From assembly GCA_024626585.2 (NCBI GenBank), contig JANKJI020000004.1, positions 143,324,748 through 143,354,048 on the forward strand: DNA of 29,301 nt. The letters run 5' to 3'. Below are positions 2,280-25,074 of this stretch, in pieces; positions within the stretch are counted from its first letter, which is position 1, and the number at the start of each line of letters is the position of its first letter. The notes below the pieces were generated by a model, which saw nothing but the letters and a program-made list of their open reading frames with translations, did no database searches and was not told where the DNA came from. This stretch comes from Ginkgo biloba (lineage: Eukaryota; Plantae; Ginkgophyta). The translations under genes and the position numbers were made by a program.

Positions 2280-2662
2280 ATTAATTTATCAATCTCCCAT
2301 AAGTTCCATTAATTATCGTTCAATATAATATTTAATTATAATTGTAACTTAATTGCAGGTTCAATATTCTCCACTTTTGTGGTAAAAACGTGTGTTAAAA
2401 TTCAATATTGTGATTCACCCTCACCACTTCCTCCTTGCTCACCTTACGTTGTATGGATTCTACCATCTCCTCTACGTCCACAATTGTTACCACATATGGA
2501 TTTGAAATCCGTTGTCACTATTACTGTCAAATAGAATGGTGGGATGCTCAACACACACACCCGTTAAGTCTAACATTAATTTATTAATTGTATTAATTAT
2601 CTCCCATAAGTTCCATTAATTATTGTTCAATATAATATTTAATTCTAATTGTAACTTAATTG
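2072..2662 (+). repeat. Diverged tandem duplication of about 285-295 bp (copy 1 2072-2355, copy 2 2367-2662)
   Basis: The copies align colinearly from TTCTCCACTTTT(T/G)TGGTAAA to ATTGTAACTTAATTG. The unit covers the right part of the MITE, its right TSD and about 65 bp of flank. Many differences are C/T or G/A transitions. Confidence 0.93.
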
Positions 2663-2719
2663 GTGGACAAAACTTTATTTTGTAAGGAATAAATGCTTGT
2701 AAATATTCCNNNNNNNNNN

Positions 2720-3014
2720 AAATGTTGTCGGCGCAATTAGCGTATGCACTAGTAAGGCGCACTAGGGTTCAAATGCGGCGTAAGGGTTTACAAGATTTTC
2801 TGTTGATTGAAGCCAGGATTTCAAACGAGGGTTCCAAAACCGCCTCGTCAAATGGAGGGTTTGAAGTTAGGGTTTGAATACAGGCCAGTGTAATATATGG
2901 TTTTATTGATAGCCATGTATGTACACTCATGGGATCTCTAGGGAAGAAGGATTTACAATTAACTTTCTAATATTGTGGTTTTTGTGTAGACTCTGCAACA
3001 TGTGCTCATGGGCC
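2720..3014 (+). promoter_or_regulatory. CpG-rich promoter/5' region with a telo-box cluster and a Site II element
   Basis: Perfect telo-box TAGGGTTT at 2868-2875, with same-orientation variants TAGGGTTC 2763, AAGGGTTT 2782, GAGGGTTC 2827 and GAGGGTTT 2855. Site II TGGGCC is at 3009-3014. CpG density is high relative to the depleted flanks. Telo-box plus Site II is the known signature of plant ribosome-biogenesis, ribosomal-protein and snoRNA genes. Confidence 0.68.
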
Positions 3015-3241
3015 GCTGCTGCGTATTTCCTTAACAGGTTCACTCTGTGTTTACATCGTTTAAGGATGGTACTCTGACCCTGAAATGTTTTATTTGTATT
3101 TATTAGAAATTGTTTGTCTTGAAATGAGCACAGTATGTGCCTGGTTATTCGTGTTTATGTCAATTTGTATATAGTCCTGCAGTTTGGCTTTTGTGAATCA
3201 AGTGTGTGTACTTTAGCTGATCTTTTTTTCTTGTGTTTTTC

Positions 3242-3392
3242 TGCCTGATATTGCAATTTCTTTTTTTCTGCTTTTATCAGAACGAGGAATCTATCGTTAG
3301 GCCAGAGTAATATTTCCCTTTAGGGTTCTACCTCTAGTTCTAATCATCCTCTTTAGCACATAGGATGCATCGGTGACAAGGTAGTGACATTC
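3242..3392 (+). ncRNA. Box H/ACA snoRNA, paralog 1 (predicted guide for an 18S rRNA pseudouridine)
   Basis: Hairpin 1 has lower stem GCCTGAT(3243-49)/GTTAGGC(3296-3302), pocket ATTGCAAT(3250-57) + TCTATC(3290-95) and an upper stem TTCTG/CAGAA. H box AGAGTA(3304-09) follows at the canonical 14-nt spacing. Hairpin 2 has CTACCT/AGGTAG and CATCCT/AGGATG, then ACA(3387-89) plus 3 nt. The pocket is complementary to plant 18S GAUAGA-UC-AUUGCAAU. Confidence 0.85.
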
Positions 3393-3556
3393 CTAAACAT
3401 CTCTAGGCTTCCGCATTTTCCCAATGTTCGACATATAAAGTGTACGTATATGTTCATGTCTTATAAATATGGCAAAATATATTAAAATTGGTGATTAGTG
3501 CAGGTGTATTAAAACTGTGAATGTGGCTCCTCGGTGCCTANNNNNNNNNNNNNNGG

Positions 3557-3699
3557 TGCCTAATATTGCAATTTCTTGTTTCTGTTTTTATCAGAACAGG
3601 GAATCTATCGTTAGGCTACAATGTTTCCTTAGGGTTCTACCTCTAGTTCTGATCATCCTCTGATATATAGGATGTATTGGTGACAAGGTAGGGACATTT
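3557..3699 (+). ncRNA. Box H/ACA snoRNA, paralog 2
   Basis: Same architecture as paralog 1: GCCTAAT(3558-64)/GTTAGGC(3610-16), identical pockets ATTGCAAT(3565-72) and TCTATC(3604-09), H-box variant ACAATG(3618-23), hairpin 2 and ACA(3694-96). Differences from paralog 1 fall mostly in loops and the hinge, or keep pairing (G-U to A-U). Similarity ends at the predicted RNA ends. Confidence 0.82.
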
Positions 3700-5761
3700 A
3701 TATTACTGCAAATTTGTGCAATGCGTTTACTACATAGGGTTACTGTAAGGTTGTTGGTTTATTATAAAGAAATAGTATATTTTGAAGTGTAAACGNNNNN
3801 NNNNNNNNACTTTGAATGTCGTGTGAAAACCGTACATCGTATAATTAATATGGAACCTGGTTCGCTGTATTCTGATAGTGAATCTCCTTATAGCTTTGTT
3901 GGGGACACATTGCGACTTTATCCCTATTTGCACTCTAAGTTTGCGAGCAGAGTCATTTCTTTTTATAAAATGTATACTTTTTCGCCCCAGGGGATTTAAT
4001 ATAGTCTACCCACAAGAGTTCCGGGGATTTTTGTATCGGAATACTGAACGTTTTGGACTGCCTTTTTTTTCCATCTTTTGCTTGCTTCCTTTCACGGGAT
4101 TCTCAAATATGTAAAATCTGCTGCAATTTCAAGCAAGAGCAAGTAATAACAATTGGAATGAGATGAAATCAATGTATGGTTATTGGAAGACGAGTCTCTA
4201 AATACTGATCCAAGACTGACTGCATAGAGAGGTATTCTTCTCACTGCTTTGTATGCTCACATTCGTTCCAAAGTATCTAGTCTTTAAAATCCTAACAGAT
4301 GCTTCGACTGTAAGTTCCATATAGGCAATGCAACGTATACATTCGATCACTCTTGCCTGCATCAAGGGTGGGGACTAGGTACTCTAATGGGCGCCAGTGC
4401 CTCTGAAGTTTTTGGAAGTGGGGCAATCCTTTAGATGCGTACCAAGTTGCTGAGCATTATTGATTCTGATGCAAGTGAAAGGTCCAGTTGTGGTCTTTTT
4501 TCATGGACTATTAGCTTGATGTTCCAGGTCCTTGCATTGAAATATAATTTAGTTGTATGGTTGATATTCTTTGCTTGATAATGAACATGCCGATATGAAA
4601 AGCTTGTAATCCACAAACGTGAACAGGGCTCATTGTTAATGACCGTTATTGTGCATTATTTCACACTAATATGAGCACTTAATGCATAAATCCCAGGCCA
4701 ATCTATGTGCTAGAATAATGAATTTGGTCACCTTACATGGTATTAGAGATGATTAGTCTAATAATTCGTTTCATTGTGACGGTGATTACTCAAATGCTGC
4801 ATGTAGATAAACAGTATTGCTCTATTTTGTGTTGCATCCACAGAAGTGGATACAAGTTCTGCAAGTGTACATTCAGTGCACTTCAATAATGGTGATTACT
4901 ATGATTGCTTCTTGAAGTTGATGATTCAATGGTCACTTTTTTGTTTAAAGAGAGCTTGAGGGTTACACTAACCGAAAACCTGAATCTATACAAGGAGATT
5001 CTTTAATCTCGAATTTCATATACAAATAAGAATGAAGGTGAATTAAATATTAATCCATTCTTTCACATGATAAATCCTTGAGATTGATGAGAGCATAAAA
5101 TGAGTTGACTTCTTTGAAGCTACAAGCTTATTTGAATAAGTTTTGGAACATATATCATTTACACATGTTTAGCATTTTCGAGTTGTCTTCTAGCAAGAAA
5201 AGTGCTTAGGAAGGTGTTTCCTTCTTTAGAATTGCTACTCATTCTCTCTAAATTTTCCTCTANNNNNNNNNNNNNNNNNNNNNNNNNNNNNNNNNNNNNN
5301 NNNNNNNNNNNNNNNNNNNNNNNNNNNNNNNNNNNNNNNNNNNNNNNNNNNNNNNNNNNNNNGTAAAATCATAAATAAAAATAATTGGCTGGAAGTAGTA
5401 GGAAAATAGGGTGCCTCCTCCTATGAAATTGGGTTGTAGTAAGGAGTAGAGAGAAAAATGGGGCATCCTCCTTAATGGGATGTTGCACTAAAATAAAAAT
5501 ATGGATGATGCGATGGACTACATGGAAAATGGAGGGAATATTCGCAACAATCCCTATATCTATTGTGGCAACCTATAAGACTGGCGACTGTTGCGACTGA
5601 TAACCCAAGCAGACTGGTAGATGGTGTCAACACCATAGGGATGCTCCTGACTTCAGTGAAGGCAGATATCGAGGCTGGTTACCTAGGTATTTTGATGAAA
5701 TATGAAGGTAGGGATCCAGATTATATTTCACTTTCTTATCTCAAGATGAGACAAAGGTTTA

Positions 5762-16984: not shown

Positions 16985-17675
16985 ATCCTTCTCATAGAAA
17001 TAATTAGTTATGTGTTCCAAGCAGCACTACTCATGAGCAATTGCTGGGAGGGGTTCATTCCTCTTCCTATGGAAGACATTTTGGAGTATTGAAGACTCTT
17101 CAACATCTCCAAAGATATTTCCATTGGCCAACTATGCGGAAGCAGGTGGAAGACTATCTTTGCAGATGTTCATTGTGCAACCAATCCAAGCCTTCCAATT
17201 AGAACATTGGGTTGTACCAGCTTCTTCCTGTGCCTTCTTGTCCTTGGGAATCCATCTCAATGGACTTCTTCACTAGGCTTTCGGTTACTCAACATCAACA
17301 TGACTACATTTTCATGGTGGTGTGTTGATTCTCAAAAATAACAATCTTCATTCCATGCAGCAAAACCATTGATGCCACTATTTGGACACACTATGGATTG
17401 CCACTCACTATTGTTTTTGATAGGGATACTTGCTTTCTCAATCATTTCTAGCGATCCTTATGGAAAATATTGGGTTGTCAGTTGCAATTCTCCACATCCT
17501 TCCATCCTCAAACTAAAGGCCAAACTGAAGTGGTGAATAGAACCCTAGTTCACGCACTTCAAATCCATCATCAAACAAATAAGCAATGGGATAAGTATCT
17601 TCATATCATCCAACACAACTACAACAGAGCAACACATGTATCCACTAGCCACTTACCTTTTGAAGTTTGCTATGG
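16985..17675 (+). mobile_element. Ty3/gypsy integrase (HHCC zinc domain plus rve core), pseudogenised
   Basis: Translation LCVPS...VHSSSYGRHFGVLKTLQHLQRYFHWPTMRKQVEDYLCRCSLCNQSK...GLYQLLPVPSCPWESISMDF...HYGLPLTIVFDRD...FSTSFHPQTKGQTEVVNRTL...YNRATHVSTSHLPFEVCYG. It has several stops and an internal deletion. Confidence 0.95.
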
Positions 17676-20399
17676 NNNNNNNNNNNNNNNNNNNNNNNNN
17701 NNNNNNNNNNNNNNNNNNNNNNNNNNNNNNNNNNNNNNNNNNNNNNNNNNNNNNNNNNNNNNNNNNNNNNNNNNNTATCACCCCCTTATTAAACTAGGGT
17801 CAAAGATGCCTTCAAGGATTAGTGGCTCTCTCACTTCCAATATCACTCACTTTCCAATGAAGGAAATAATATATCAACCTAGGATTTAGGACACCACTTT
17901 AAATCAGGAACTTATAATTGTTATATTTCCATATCCTATTTAATCTTCACTTTCAATGAGTATTTTGGTATTTTTTCATAATAATCTTCCATTAAATGAA
18001 TACAATTAAGATTGGCAATGAAACTATTTATGTGGGATCATATTAGCATAATAATCATCCATGTCTTTGGATGAAAAATATTTTCCTATATCTCTTCATA
18101 TAGGTTTAAACTTCTTCAACACAGAGTGCATAACATCCTTTAACATGTCTCTCTAGTATTTTTGGGTTGGCATAATACTCATATAGGCCAAATTTATCTT
18201 TTGTGATATGCAATCGCTCCTTCCACATGATCATCAATTTCCTCTCATATCGAGCTTCTTCATGGACAACAGACCCTACAACAAACATTCCTTGCGAAGA
18301 GTTCAAAATTCATTAGGGTGACCTTTTAGGAGGTCAACAAGACCATTCCTTCACTCTAAATACCAACTTCATATTTTAAGTTGTATAAGGGATACAAATC
18401 TCTTATCATTTTGTAAAGATAATGCTTTCACCTCCACTTTAAGAACATTGGTTCAAAGTTACGATTCTTTGATGTTATTGTAAAACCCATTGTGCTTAAT
18501 AGATTAGAGATTTTGGTCATATAACCTTGGGTATATAGAGTGGGCAAGGGTTGATATGATAATCATGCTTTAACATGTCAAACCTTGTAAGCATACAATT
18601 CTTTAATGCATTATTCAAAAAGAGTTTGCTACTCATTAGGTTTATGTTGAGACCATTTTTATGCTTACATCATATCTTTAGAGGATTTATTATATGGAAT
18701 ATATGATATTTTAGAGGAATAAATATCCATATTTATCCCTTTGAAAATCACATGGTTTGGTCTTCCTCAATCATTATACTTATAAGCATTGTTATTATTT
18801 AGATGTTTCAACACTCTCATAGATGTGAGCATATTTATTTATTGTGTTCTCCCTTTTAGATTCTCTCTAGATGTTCCTCATCTCCTTATATTTAATATGG
18901 AGATACATGAAGCTATCTAAGATAATATCTATCAGGTGTACATTTAGCTACATGGATTGCTCCCCCCCACCCCCTTAGTCCCAAATTACCCTTTTATGCT
19001 CAATACTTCCTTTATATTCGATGAGTCCATTATTATTCTAGACTAACTTAGGCATCATTGATCCTCTCGGTTGAGATTTGTATTGGGTCAACTTTGAATT
19101 TACTTGTAGCATCAACTCAAAGTGGAGAAATATCATTATATATTTAGGGATCGATGTATTTTAAGACTTTTCTCTTTAGATGTCAAGATAGAAGAGAACT
19201 TTATTCTTAGGTGTCCAATTTACTACGTGATCAAAAGGAGCTACTATTATTTTTTCAGGAGATCAAATGGATCCCTCTCCATCTTATTTTGATATAAGGA
19301 CCAAAGGTGCCTATCCCTTTTCTTAGGGATCTATTATTGTATATATTTCACTTGTTAAGAGATAGATATAGAGCTTAGGGTTCTCACTTAGTTATAATCT
19401 CTCAAAACACCTACATAATAGTCCTAGGGGGGTCTCTTAGATATAAAATCTAAAAACATGTGCAAGATAGACCTAATAACTAATACCCATATATAGGCTC
19501 CCATCCATATATTTTCTCCCCATATTTTGTACCCTTAAGTAAACTCTTTTATACAATTTATAATTGCATAAAAAATAAAATCTAATAATCATTTATACCC
19601 CTTTTATATAAAAATAGAATAATCATACAAATTATAACAAATATACAGAGGAATTGACCCTAAATAGAATAAAATATTTATACATGTTTAATATAATAAA
19701 ATAAATTATATTAACACCAAACCATACGTATAAGTTAAAGTGTAAATAAATATAATAGGTTTTTTCTACTCTTTTTTATCAAATGAAAACTATAGACATT
19801 CCTTTACAAGAAGGGATTATTCTATAACAAGAGGTAGTTATTTGTATGCATAGCTATGAAATATGGAGAAAATTGATGATTTCCAATATTGGAAGTATAT
19901 TTATCACGGGGTGATTTCTATGAGTTTTACATATACTATACCTATTAGAGAAAGAGAAGAAAATAAAAAGAATATAACTTACTTTAAAACTTATTGAGAA
20001 ATAAAAAATAAGACCAATATTCTTTTCACATATGATAAGAAGTTCAAGATTTAATTGACGGACAATATTGCTATTGAGAACCGTGTCCCTCATAATTAAA
20101 CATAATTGAAGTGTTGCTAATAACTCTGATAATACTCATAATATTGAGAAACATTAGTTAAAAAATCAACACTATTGTCTAAATGTATAGATACTCCATA
20201 CACATAAATGCATGCTTCTAAATCCAAATGTCATTATAGATTCTATAATAGATGAGATTCTTGAGACATATGAAATCGATGAGCTAAGTAGGGGATCATG
20301 GGCTTTAGTTAGAGGTCTTGTTGTAGATCCTAAGTACACTTGTAAGCCTTAGAGGGCTTAGAATCTTATAGGGGAGGTTATATGGCCTCAAGTTTCTAA

Positions 20400-20950: not shown

Positions 20951-21899
20951 TCAATTCACATGAAAAAAAATGCACATGTGAAGATGAACATTTAGCACTT
21001 TTTTAGTCCTAGACAAAGATGATAGTAGTCACCCAAATTTGTATAAGCCTCATATTCATTGATATAATCATAAGAAGTAATGATTCGAGTGTTATTAAAG
21101 TTTGCTAATGCTTATACAATTCCAAGATATTATACTTTATGACTTTATCTCCAAGGACACATCAAAGATATTCTTCAAAAGTTTCAATAATAGCATATTA
21201 AAACCAAATGCATTATTTTCATTTAAAAATTTTCCTATCTAAAGGTGCATAGGGGCTATGTGTCATACAATACCCCTAATAGTGATAGTCACATGTTAAT
21301 CCTTATGGTTTATAAGGTTCGATAACTTCAAAATTTCCTATAACAACTTTAAAATGATAACTATATTTGGGTTTATATCATTTTGAAGAAAATCATGACT
21401 CAAACATTATTCATTCAATAAGTAAATGAAATTTAAATCCAATAACAAAATGAATGTTAATAAGGGATTGACTTCATCTACATGTCTAAGCCACTATAGA
21501 ACCACTAAATTTATTTGCTCCTCTATATTAGCAATGTGGTAAACCATGGANNNNNNNNNNNNNNNNNNNNNNNNNNNNNNNNNNNNNNNNNNNNNNNNNN
21601 NNNNNNNNNNNNNNNNNNNNNNNNNNNNNNNNNNNNNNNNNNNNNNNNNNGATGGAAATTGGTATTTCTATTGGTAGATATGTGAGTAACTCTTAAGAAC
21701 CTACCCTTAGGAGGGTAATAATAACTAGAAATGATTGATAATACCCCATAGACTGTGAATCAAAAGGAGGAATCTATCTAAGAAGGAACTCATGTCTAAG
21801 AAGCTAGTTGGTGAGATAATGTCTTATAAAGGCAACAATCAGTAGTTGGTTTAAGAGGATGATCAACGAAATTGGGATTAAGATGCGACCTATAATCTT

Positions 21900-22713
21900 A
21901 CAAGAGAAAGTAATGGGGATTTTGTTTGTGATGGACGAAATCATAACAAAGTAATACTGCTTGAAGGTGGAAGGTCCACAAGTCATGCACTTCAATTCTC
22001 AAAGAACTAATGATGGTATATGAGGGATAATCATCAAACAACTCTACGTTAGAATCCATGATAAAACATAAGGTGCATGCGTTATACATAATCATTGGGC
22101 ATAAAGCATCTGTAAGTGAATTTTCAAGTTTATCATAAAATCCTAGGGCTTAACCTTAGATAGGCGATAAAAACTACCAAGATGGATTATTATTAGGGCA
22201 AAGGGAATTTTTAATAGAGTGATGGCATATCTAGAGACCAAAAAGAACATTAATGATGAAGTCATTCTACTAGGATCACATGGATATTGAGAGATGAAAG
22301 GTAAAGGAATAAATCAAATTCTATACCCAAGTAGTCCTCTTTGTAAATAATAGATAGTATGTTACGTTCCTAAAATTACAACTATATGTTAGAAGAAGTT
22401 AAATAAGAACCCTTAAAGCTAAGATCATATGGATACTTAAACGAATTCATTTAGACTCTTAGAGGAGCTAGAATAAGGTTGCTCAAGTTCTTAATATCAA
22501 GGGACAATTTTAGACCTAAACAACATCCCCAACTGACATAGTAAAAGAATAAAGTCATTTGCATATGTTTGGGATATGAAAGGGATAGCATTCTTCTCAT
22601 TTTACATCAATTCAACAAAATTTTCTACTTTCCTTCTTTGGAAAAAAACATCTTTAGGAAGTAGGCACTTCCACCTTATTCTCTTATGGGTATAAGGTGC
22701 CCCACAATCTCAT
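21900..22713 (-). mobile_element. Possible very decayed LINE APE endonuclease fragment
   Basis: Minus-strand remnants GGSAYFLK, VVILG and TLCF...DDY occur in the order expected for APE motifs, but they are heavily frameshifted. Confidence 0.3.
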
Positions 22714-22913
22714 ANNNNNNNNNNNNNNNNNNNNNNNNNNNNNNNNNNNNNNNNNNNNNNNNNNNNNNNNNNNNNNNNNNNNNNNNNNNNNNNNNNNNNN
22801 NNNNNNNNNNNNNNNNNNNNNNNNNNNNNNNNNNNNNNNNNNNNNNNNNNNNNNNNNNNNNNNNNNNNNNNNNNNNNNNNNNNNNNNNNNNNNNNNNNNN
22901 NNNNNNNNNNNNN

Positions 22914-23297
22914 AGGATTTCCTTTGAGAACATGAACGCAGGTGGTGCATGGATGTTGTTGGCTTATGTTGTAAGGTTTTAGGTTAAGTCTTACAATGAG
23001 CACAACCCTTGTGGTTAGTTTCCATCCATCATTGAGTTTGGAACCTTGAATACATTACTACTAATAAGATAAAGGAAGGTGCAGATGACATCAAATCATC
23101 ATGCCCCTTATACCCTTAGTGACACGCATATTATAATGGTTAGGACAAAGGGTTATGACCTCATAAGGGAAAGATAACCTAAAAAACCTAATCTTAGTTC
23201 AAATTACAAGCTATAACTCAATTGCATGAAGATAAATCACTAGTAATTACTTGTCATCCATATTGTAATAAATTCATTCCTAGGCCTTGTAGGCACC
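22914..23297 (+). pseudogene. rrn16: Nuclear plastid DNA (NUPT): decayed fragment from the 3' part of chloroplast 16S rRNA
   Basis: Colinear with 16S from CAGGTGGTGCATGG through GGTTAAGTC, CAACCCT, the plastid-type TTGAGTTTGGAACC(C/T)TGAA, AGGAAGGTG, TCATCATGCCCCTTAT and GGACAAAGGGT to GGCCTTGTA..CACC. Nearly all CG/CHG sites are converted to TG/CA/TA. Confidence 0.95.
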
Positions 23298-25074
23298 ATA
23301 TGGAGTATTGTATTTATCTATTACTATATGAAGAGGGTTCTCTAATTAGAAGGTACACCAAATAAGTGTACCTTCTAGAGTTATAGCCTCATAATCACTA
23401 GCTAATATGATTTTCTTTTATGCCCTTATTCATTCATGGTTTGATATTCTAATGTCTCGGGAATAAAGGAACTACACCAATCCATATTAAACTTGTCATT
23501 AAACTATACTATGATGATAATATTATAGGGGAAGCCCTATGAAAAAATAGTTCAATGCGAAGATGATAAAATTATTAATGCCACGTATTCTTATTCTTAT
23601 TCAAAGCTCGTCTTCTTCAACACCGCACACATACTTTGACATCCTTTCTTATCCCACTCCATATTCCACCTCCCTCCAAGAGATGCATATTGATCAATCG
23701 ATCTCTATGTATATTAGGGAACTCTAGAAATGAGGGCGCATGAAGTATAGTTGGGAAAAATTCCCTAAGTAAATCTCTTATGGGCATGAATAAAAAGGAA
23801 AAGAAAAGACAATGGTATGAAAATTGCTTCATCCTCATCTATTCCTTTATTTGTCTTCTCTCTCTTCTTTATTTTTTATTTTTTAAATAAAAAACATAGA
23901 AGCCCCGTGTATAAGTGTGAAAATTCATAAAAAAATCAAGAGTACAGGTATAGAAAAAATGAATAATGACTTTTAAATCATATTACAATCTAAGATCTCC
24001 AAAGCATATAACTATATCATCATCATAAAAAGGCTTAATCCATGTTCGTATGGAAAAGTAGTTGTAAATTTTTTATCGACTTCCTCTAGAAGGTGCCATC
24101 ATATTTTGTAGGTTGTCTCATCATCATGTAAGATAAAGACCTTAAATCAACATGAAAACACTTATTTGGTCTTCTTTCTAACTTTGCATATCTTGATGAT
24201 GGCTTGATGGGTAACAATGCTATTTGTGCTAAGTCAACAATTGAAAAGAGGATAAATTCAAAGCCTACAAGCACACTCATTATATATATGGATTAGATTA
24301 AATACATATGCATAGATTAAATATAATGATGTATAATATATGATTCTTTTTCTTTTTTAATTTTTTCTTAGAAGCCCATAATATTTCACATAATGTTTTA
24401 AATTAATATTATCTTCCTACCCCATAAAATTTATGCCAAGGAACTTAATAAAGCTACACATTATTATCTGAGAGTAAAAAGGATTAATAAAATCTACATG
24501 AATTAAATCATAACCTCCTATATTAATCCTCTAATCTATTTATTGGCATACTAAAATAAGTAAGAAAACCTAGTCAACACACATTTATAAAGGAATATTT
24601 TATCATATTTATGGTATATCTCTTGTTTCTCTTTCTAAAGCATTTTCTAANNNNNNNNNNNNNNNNNNNNNNNNNNNAAAAAATTCTTAAGATGTTAAAA
24701 TGCTACCTATTGGGCAAATGCTCAAATCTTTATAAAATGATTTTGGTTTTAAATAATTTTCCATATTACCTTATCTTTCTTCCACTAAATTTATTTCATT
24801 ACTTCTCTTATTATCCTATATAATAATTATATCCCATCTTTACAAAATGAATTTTAAAAAGTGAAAAATATTATTGATTTGTGTAGATATTGACATAATT
24901 TGATCTNNNNNNNNNNNNNNNNNNNNNNNNTTATAAATCAAATTGAGTTGCAATCCATTAGCACCTATTCAATTATTCTTTCATTATGTTAATATTTACT
25001 AATAAAGTTTCATACATCTTGAATAGTGTATATGGTAAATAACATTGCACCTGAATAGATGATGACTCCCTCTA

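Follow-up and report, generated by a model that had tools for sequence, protein, structure and literature searches.

Two tandem H/ACA snoRNA copies

The window, by which we mean the whole 29-kb stretch of DNA analysed (29,301 nucleotides), contains two tandem copies of a box H/ACA snoRNA. Their positions and parts are given below, with the supporting evidence in brackets.

3242-3392, + strand: H/ACA snoRNA copy 1, 151 nt, with canonical boxes (alignment, fold, covariance model R1 with 139.8 bits)
3243-3249 with 3296-3302, + strand: copy 1, basal stem of the 5' hairpin (read from the sequence)
3250-3257, + strand: copy 1, 5' strand of the 5' pocket, AUUGCAAU, predicted to pair with 18S on the 3' side of the target (invariant in five of five homologs, 8 Watson-Crick pairs)
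3290-3295, + strand: copy 1, 3' strand of the 5' pocket, UCUAUC, predicted to pair with 18S GAUAGA (invariant in five of five homologs, 6 Watson-Crick pairs)
3304-3309, + strand: copy 1, H box AGAGUA, which fits ANANNA (read from the sequence)
3328-3384, + strand: copy 1, 3' hairpin with basal stem CUACCU/AGGUAG, a small pocket CUAGUU / UGACA and an extended upper stem (RNAalifold, pair counts)
3387-3389, + strand: copy 1, ACA box, with the predicted 3' end of the RNA at 3392 (read from the sequence)
3557-3699, + strand: H/ACA snoRNA copy 2, 143 nt, with a non-canonical hinge box (alignment, fold, covariance model R1 with 144.3 bits)
3565-3572 and 3604-3609, + strand: copy 2, strands of the 5' pocket (read from the sequence)
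3618-3623, + strand: copy 2, hinge box ACAAUG (read from the sequence)
3694-3696, + strand: copy 2, ACA box (read from the sequence)

The two copies lie in direct orientation and are 85-86% identical, with the similarity running from the motif TGCCT to 3 nt beyond the ACA box and the flanks being unrelated, which agrees with the two diverged copies described by the first-pass annotation. Pattern searches and the covariance model R1 find no third copy in the 29-kb window. Single-sequence folding predicts for each copy a 5' hairpin, in which an internal loop separates the 7-bp basal stem from the upper stem; the hinge, a 3' hairpin and the ACA box come next. The minimum free energy (MFE) z-score is -2.9 for copy 2 and about -0.5 (-0.49) for copy 1 alone. 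Both copies keep every base of the 5' pocket, and the differences between them keep the pairing by changing G-U to A-U pairs; both the invariance of the pocket and the pairing-preserving substitutions had been pointed out from the sequence before.

The hairpin-H-hairpin-ACA fold proposed by the first-pass annotation is found in both copies, but the hinge box of copy 2, ACAAUG, departs from ANANNA, and the hinge of this copy has a 5-nt deletion relative to copy 1. The G at position 6 of the H box is also found in one legume homolog (L001, AUAUUG; these homologs are described below), the other two (L003 and L007) reading AUAUUA. The hinge of the window copies includes a short CCCUUUAGGG hairpin and also contains UUAGGGUUC.

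For an H/ACA guide, we took a distance of 14-16 nt from the target U to the H or ACA box downstream of it. In copy 1, counting from the first base of the 3' strand of the pocket, 14 nt (3290-3303) lead up to the H box, and the same spacing of 14 nt, which falls within that range, is seen in the window and legume copies. In the 3' hairpin the distance from the pocket to the ACA box is 13 nt, so that the uniform 14-nt spacing claimed earlier is right for the 5' hairpin and wrong for the 3' hairpin.

Covariation supports an extended upper stem in the 3' hairpin, leaving a small 3' pocket of 5+4/5 nt, (C)UAGYU and UGACA, the strands of which are nearly invariant. Unconstrained scans of plant rRNAs for a target of the 3' hairpin gave noise, and with the small pocket only two candidates fit all five homologs, namely 18S GUCA-UC-AGCU (4+4) and 25S UGUCG-UU-GGCUAA (5+5/6, with wobbles next to the target). 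After six pocket definitions, neither is better than chance. The 3' pocket is treated here as a putative orphan, since the scans offer no convincing rRNA target.

The transcribed unit and its surroundings

Both copies lie within one transcribed unit, which has telo-boxes at its 5' end and is interrupted by an assembly gap.

2686-4714, + strand: unspliced transcribed unit (precursor or host RNA) containing both copies (contigs of sequencing runs X5 and X13, reads of run X24)
2763-2903, - strand: telo-box cluster at the 5' end of the unit (one exact and four one-mismatch copies)
3533-3554, no strand: spurious assembly gap made up of a duplicated ggtgccta and 14 N, with the N run at 3541-3554 (contigs of runs X5 and X13)

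Run X5 provides a single 1991-nt contig covering 2686-4714, and run X13 provides contigs for 3035-4696 and 2735-3064, with little or nothing outside these limits. An unspliced contig confined in this way fits a discrete transcript rather than the DNA of a very large genome. The 820 bases used as a query (2721-3540) are contained in 20 runs. Of these, 16 from six studies are small runs of 44-94 million letters in which 99-100% of the sampled words are present; they are transcriptome-sized, and their RNA nature is presumed. The poly(A) RNA-seq run X24 adds two read pairs within 2805-3107 whose first mates map to the minus strand. Provided that the library, of undocumented type, follows the usual stranded protocol, this orientation would correspond to plus-strand RNA. 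Apart from these reads, the RNA evidence at the locus consists of precursor-length contigs, which cannot show mature ends.

The contigs of X5 and X13 have no spliced joints across the unit. The unit encodes no open reading frame (ORF) of at least 80 amino acids, and neither a search for paired C and D boxes within the 2 kb nor Rfam on 2600-4900 indicates a C/D snoRNA. One X13 contig shares 3035-3064 with the window and then continues with about 290 letters that are absent from it. Position 3065 begins with GA and not GT, so the branch at 3064 has no canonical splice donor; it could be due to a paralogous locus, an insertion allele or a chimeric contig.

Telo-boxes mark the promoters of plant snoRNA clusters and ribosomal-protein genes. 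An exact AAACCCTA occurs in the window only at 2868-2875, and four copies with one mismatch lie between 2763 and 2903. A single unspliced contig of 2 kb, headed by telo-boxes, carries both snoRNA copies of the window, which is the arrangement of a polycistronic or host transcript.

The assembly gap lies just before copy 2. The 8-mer ggtgccta flanks the 14 N on either side, and the contigs of X5 and X13 both span 3533-3554 and skip exactly 22 letters, corresponding to the 14 N and one 8-mer. The gap is therefore an unmerged overlap, and copy 2 is continuous and intact; about 142 nt actually separate the two copies. Two further N gaps, at 2711-2720 and 3797-3809, are mis-sized, as the X5/X13 contigs omit 7 and 9 letters there, indicating that a few real bases replace the N runs. 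The window also differs from the X5 and/or X13 contigs at single bases (3783 T>C, 4048 A>G, 4135 A>G, and 4290 T>G), and these differences are probably allelic or between individuals.

The ORFs of the window are gap-ridden or transposon remnants. An ORF at 17470-17889, which is interrupted by a gap, shows integrase-like residues (…HPQTKGQTEVVNRTL…) and resembles what is left of a Ty3/gypsy-type retrotransposon. At 21509-23315 lies a small-subunit rRNA of bacterial type, full-length but badly decayed (Rfam SSU_rRNA_bacteria, only 223 bits over model positions 1-1533). Its GC content is 0.37, it has an N gap, and at many places A replaces a G, or U a C, of the consensus. It resembles a plastid-like organelle 16S that entered the nuclear DNA long ago and has decayed by deamination.

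Complementarity to 18S rRNA

The rRNA reference is a plant rDNA contig (L027), present as contamination in the assembly of a Psychotria leaf-nodule symbiont, which stands in for the 18S of the window's own species; Rfam recognises a complete 18S (846-2655), 5.8S and 25S on it. In bacterial and archaeal assemblies, a 20-mer of plant 18S finds more than 93 contigs that carry eukaryotic 18S, L013-L092 among them. Their sources include leaf-nodule Burkholderia with plant host rDNA, a Frankia from nodules and sponge-symbiont metagenome-assembled genomes, and the eukaryotic 18S in these assemblies is host or laboratory contamination.

Compared with the 18S, 5.8S and 25S of L027, the 5' pocket has exactly one site with at least 8 pairs. 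This site is GAUAGA-UC-AUUGCAAU, where 6+8 Watson-Crick pairs form with zero wobble and a U takes the unpaired position, U1556 of the 1810-nt 18S of L027. The probability of finding 14 specified pairs by chance over about 1,300 U sites is of the order of 1e-5. In the motif GAGG, the second G is m7G1581 in tomato, and the target U precedes it by 27 nt; this U therefore corresponds to U1554 in the 1808-nt numbering and, in the Arabidopsis numbering of 1804 nt, to U1550. When aligned to E. coli 16S, the predicted target falls in helix 42. The first-pass annotation had derived the same site by the H/ACA pairing rule from a plant 18S sequence; the rule holds, the 18S sequence it gave is confirmed on L027, and both the perfect 6+8 match with U at the modified position and the distance of 27 nt to the m7G are reproduced.

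Homologs in legumes, conservation and covariation

A metagenome scan, using as pattern the two pocket strands with their adjoining bases, yields 12 contigs. Seven of them, representing three distinct sequences, carry full-length homologs. The other five (GC 0.41) are chance matches, which neither have the hairpin-H layout nor match the model R1.

L001, 3870-4041: legume homolog
L003, 5757-5922: legume homolog
L007, 2156-2328: legume homolog

In these contigs the homolog is part of a snoRNA cluster with the order snoR1, H/ACA homolog, snoR12 (one or two copies) and U24 within about 900 nt, where the neighbours snoR1 and snoR12/U24 are recognised by Rfam with 60-84 bits. One of the homolog contigs encodes a MULE (Mutator-type) transposase, and all of its named relatives are from Vigna or Vicia, which indicates that the plant is a legume. 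A telo-box-like TAGGGTT(T) is located between snoR1 and the H/ACA gene in the legume cluster (L001-L012).

The window and legume copies share 65-70% overall identity. The conservation and covariation set consists of five distinct homologs, two from the window and three from legumes, representing two lineages. The invariant columns are distributed as follows.

5' pocket, 5' strand: 8 of 8 columns invariant
5' pocket, 3' strand: 6 of 6
5' hairpin, basal stem: 13 of 14
5' hairpin, upper stem plus loop: 11 of 32
Hinge: 8 of 50

On the H/ACA structure, 92.8% of the cells show standard pairing, compared with 32-51% when the partners are slid by 1-3 columns. Eight pairs show double-sided changes, a number that drops to 0-3 with slid partners; in the 3' hairpin, for example, C-G is exchanged for U-A in the basal stem, as is G-C in the upper stem. 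Covariation from five sequences and two lineages is supportive, not conclusive. The legume copies read AUAAA or GUAAA where the window has UGACA, so their 3' box would be AAA, or an AUA 2 nt upstream, and not ACA. Their hinge is longer and includes an extra small hairpin.

The presence of the family in both a gymnosperm-like genome, that of the window, and legumes indicates that it is old, and the lineage-specific origin suggested by the first-pass annotation has to be given up. Its claim of a functional snoRNA family, in contrast, gains weight from the legume homologs, in which the pockets are unchanged and the stems carry compensatory changes; it had proposed a search for covarying homologs in related genomes, and these full-length copies with the eight double-changed pairs are of that kind.

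Relation to known snoRNA families

No snoRNA family of Rfam 15 matches the whole window at the gathering score. With E values up to 10, Rfam searches of 3100-3850, of 2600-4900 and of a legume copy assign no family to the H/ACA copies either, which answers the Rfam comparison proposed with the first-pass annotation. The only match to the snoRNA stretch, SNORA1 (RF00408), is noise: it scores 15.7 bits where the family's gathering score is 70 (E = 9.3), and its likeness is the generic H/ACA shape. SNORD110 stays below its gathering score with 16.7 bits.

Plant H/ACA guides in general, e.g., snoR72-snoR100 and snoR134-160, likewise fold as hairpin-H-hairpin-ACA with a bipartite pocket 14-15 nt from the box, and are likewise found in polycistronic clusters or non-coding precursors in a telo-box promoter context. 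The window family differs from the compiled Arabidopsis H/ACA guides in that its guide sequence and target position are absent there. The Arabidopsis guides snoR73, snoR78 and snoR152 (18S U1520, U1523, and U1531) address the same part of the 3' major domain 20-30 nt upstream; their target nucleotides are different ones, and none of the three is predicted for U1550. Near snoR1a/b, as well as in front of snoR12-1a and snoR12-2, the Arabidopsis annotation shows only C/D genes or nothing, and so offers no name for the family.

In maize clusters snoR2 presumably follows snoR1, as the H/ACA homolog follows snoR1 in the legume contigs, and this order raised the suspicion that the family might be snoR2. 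snoR2, the most widespread H/ACA family of land plants, is reported from nearly all of them (Patra Bhattacharya et al. 2016, PMC5122169). Its published hairpin-1 pockets in pine, Amborella, date palm and maize (...AUGCCACGUC... / ...GAUGCUAUGA...) are different (PMC5122169), so the identity is rejected. The pocket octamer is absent from the searchable part of the supplement to that study, which comprises 200 of its 621 files.

A full-text literature search with a 13-mer spanning the guide and the basal stem gives no match, and a literature search finds no work on H/ACA snoRNAs of Ginkgo or other gymnosperms. The earlier description of the family as undescribed therefore holds for Rfam, the Arabidopsis compilations and the literature searched, whereas species catalogues or databases may list it. 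The family is apparently uncatalogued, and the predicted pseudouridine is unreported.

Modification status of the predicted site

To our knowledge, plant rRNA pseudouridine maps come almost wholly from Arabidopsis and tomato, and many H/ACA guides are without an assignment. For Arabidopsis, a review table lists neither a pseudouridine nor an H/ACA guide at 18S U1550, with guides being present for U1520, U1523 and U1531, and it gives U1550 as a mapped 2'-O-methylation without a guide. This methylation is described in the RiboMethSeq study of Azevedo-Favory et al. 2021 (PMC8583080) as Um1554, with a strong signal which is lower in nuc1-2 and is also present in stems, and with the remark "snoRNA not found". 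It is one of three guide-less Arabidopsis 18S positions with a strong RiboMethSeq signal in that study (PMC8583080). The position is exactly the nucleotide predicted as the target of the window family in the 1808-nt numbering, in which snoR8 guides Am1579 (PMC8583080). Um1554 is, however, a reported 2'-O-methylation and not a pseudouridine, and a link to an H/ACA guide is speculation. The Arabidopsis Nm table of Wu et al. 2021 does not include U1550/Um1554.

The tomato 18S contains the target sequence. A mass-spectrometry table for tomato lists psi1535, psi1538, psi1567, Am1579 and m7G1581 and gives position 1554 as unmodified. The main texts of Chen & Wu 2009 and Kim et al. 2010 do not mention U1550/U1554, nor do the main texts of the tobacco and wheat ribosome papers mention 18S positions 1551-1556. 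That the target U is missing among the described plant 18S pseudouridines, as the first-pass annotation had stated, is correct for the published Arabidopsis and tomato lists.

Interpretation

The two copies belong to a genuine, old seed-plant family of H/ACA snoRNAs, a known class. We consider it probable that the stretch represents two tandem H/ACA genes on a telo-box-associated transcript of about 2 kb, which guide the pseudouridylation of the 18S U, and likewise probable that this species has, at least in copy 1, a functioning guide for this uridine. The sequence, fold, conservation, covariation, unique complementarity and transcription of the locus are observed, and from them we infer processing, snoRNP assembly and modification. 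RNA polymerase II would produce an unspliced transcript of about 2 kb with both copies, from which the mature RNAs of about 145-150 nt would be cut out and assembled into a snoRNP with Cbf5/dyskerin, Nop10, Nhp2 and Gar1. The 5' pocket would then pair with the 18S pre-rRNA on either side of the U in GAUAGA-UC-AUUGCAAU, bringing it to the catalytic site at a distance of 14-15 nt from the H box, where it would be converted to pseudouridine; the 18S of this species would be expected to contain GAUAGAUCAUUGCAAU. Copy 1 has canonical boxes, and copy 2 with its ACAAUG hinge may be the less efficient guide. The particle would need the 3' hairpin, which is conserved.

The same RNA might bind 18S without modifying it, acting like snR30/U17 as a chaperone of folding or processing, or might modify only a minor share of the ribosomes, which we regard as unlikely. 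The tomato site is unmodified despite the presence of the target sequence and Arabidopsis Psi-seq gives no pseudouridine there, while the guide is still invariant over a long time span, all of which would suit such a role. The pocket geometry is nevertheless canonical for modification, with an unpaired U-N and 14 nt to the H box, and the unmodified sites in tomato and Arabidopsis may simply reflect a loss of the snoRNA gene. More improbable still is that the window copies are decaying duplicates, i.e., pseudogenes, with the active family member elsewhere in the genome. The non-canonical hinge box and the 5-nt hinge deletion of copy 2 point in this direction, as does RNA evidence of precursor length only; on the other hand, both copies keep all pocket bases, the stems and the ACA box, their differences preserve pairing, the locus is transcribed in many runs, and the boxes of copy 1 are canonical.

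We give hardly any credence to the idea that the hairpin pair arose by chance, or is a piece of some repeat or transposable element, and matches 18S by accident. Such an origin could be thought of in a transposon-rich window with an integrase remnant (17470-17889), given the unremarkable MFE z-score of copy 1 (-0.49), yet there are only two copies within the window, the 14-bp target is unique, the stems covary, and the homologs reside within a bona fide snoRNA cluster of another plant lineage.

Returning to two working guide genes as the preferred reading, a bolder proposal, which we put forward tentatively and consider rather doubtful, connects the family to the Arabidopsis methylation data. 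In this proposal the ancient seed-plant family installs an unmapped pseudouridine in helix 42, or, together with an unknown methylase, a 2'-O-methyl-pseudouridine, which has been read as "Um1554", and both the family and the modification have been lost in some plants, e.g., in tomato.

The understanding of how H/ACA guides act would remain unchanged. If the preferred reading is true, a deeply conserved guide family is common to a gymnosperm-like genome and legumes, with a precise predicted modification in the head of the 40S subunit, in helix 42 near the m7G, and it offers a candidate explanation for one of the three guide-less Arabidopsis 18S RiboMethSeq positions. The family would then be an example of the gain and loss of rRNA modifications between plant lineages.
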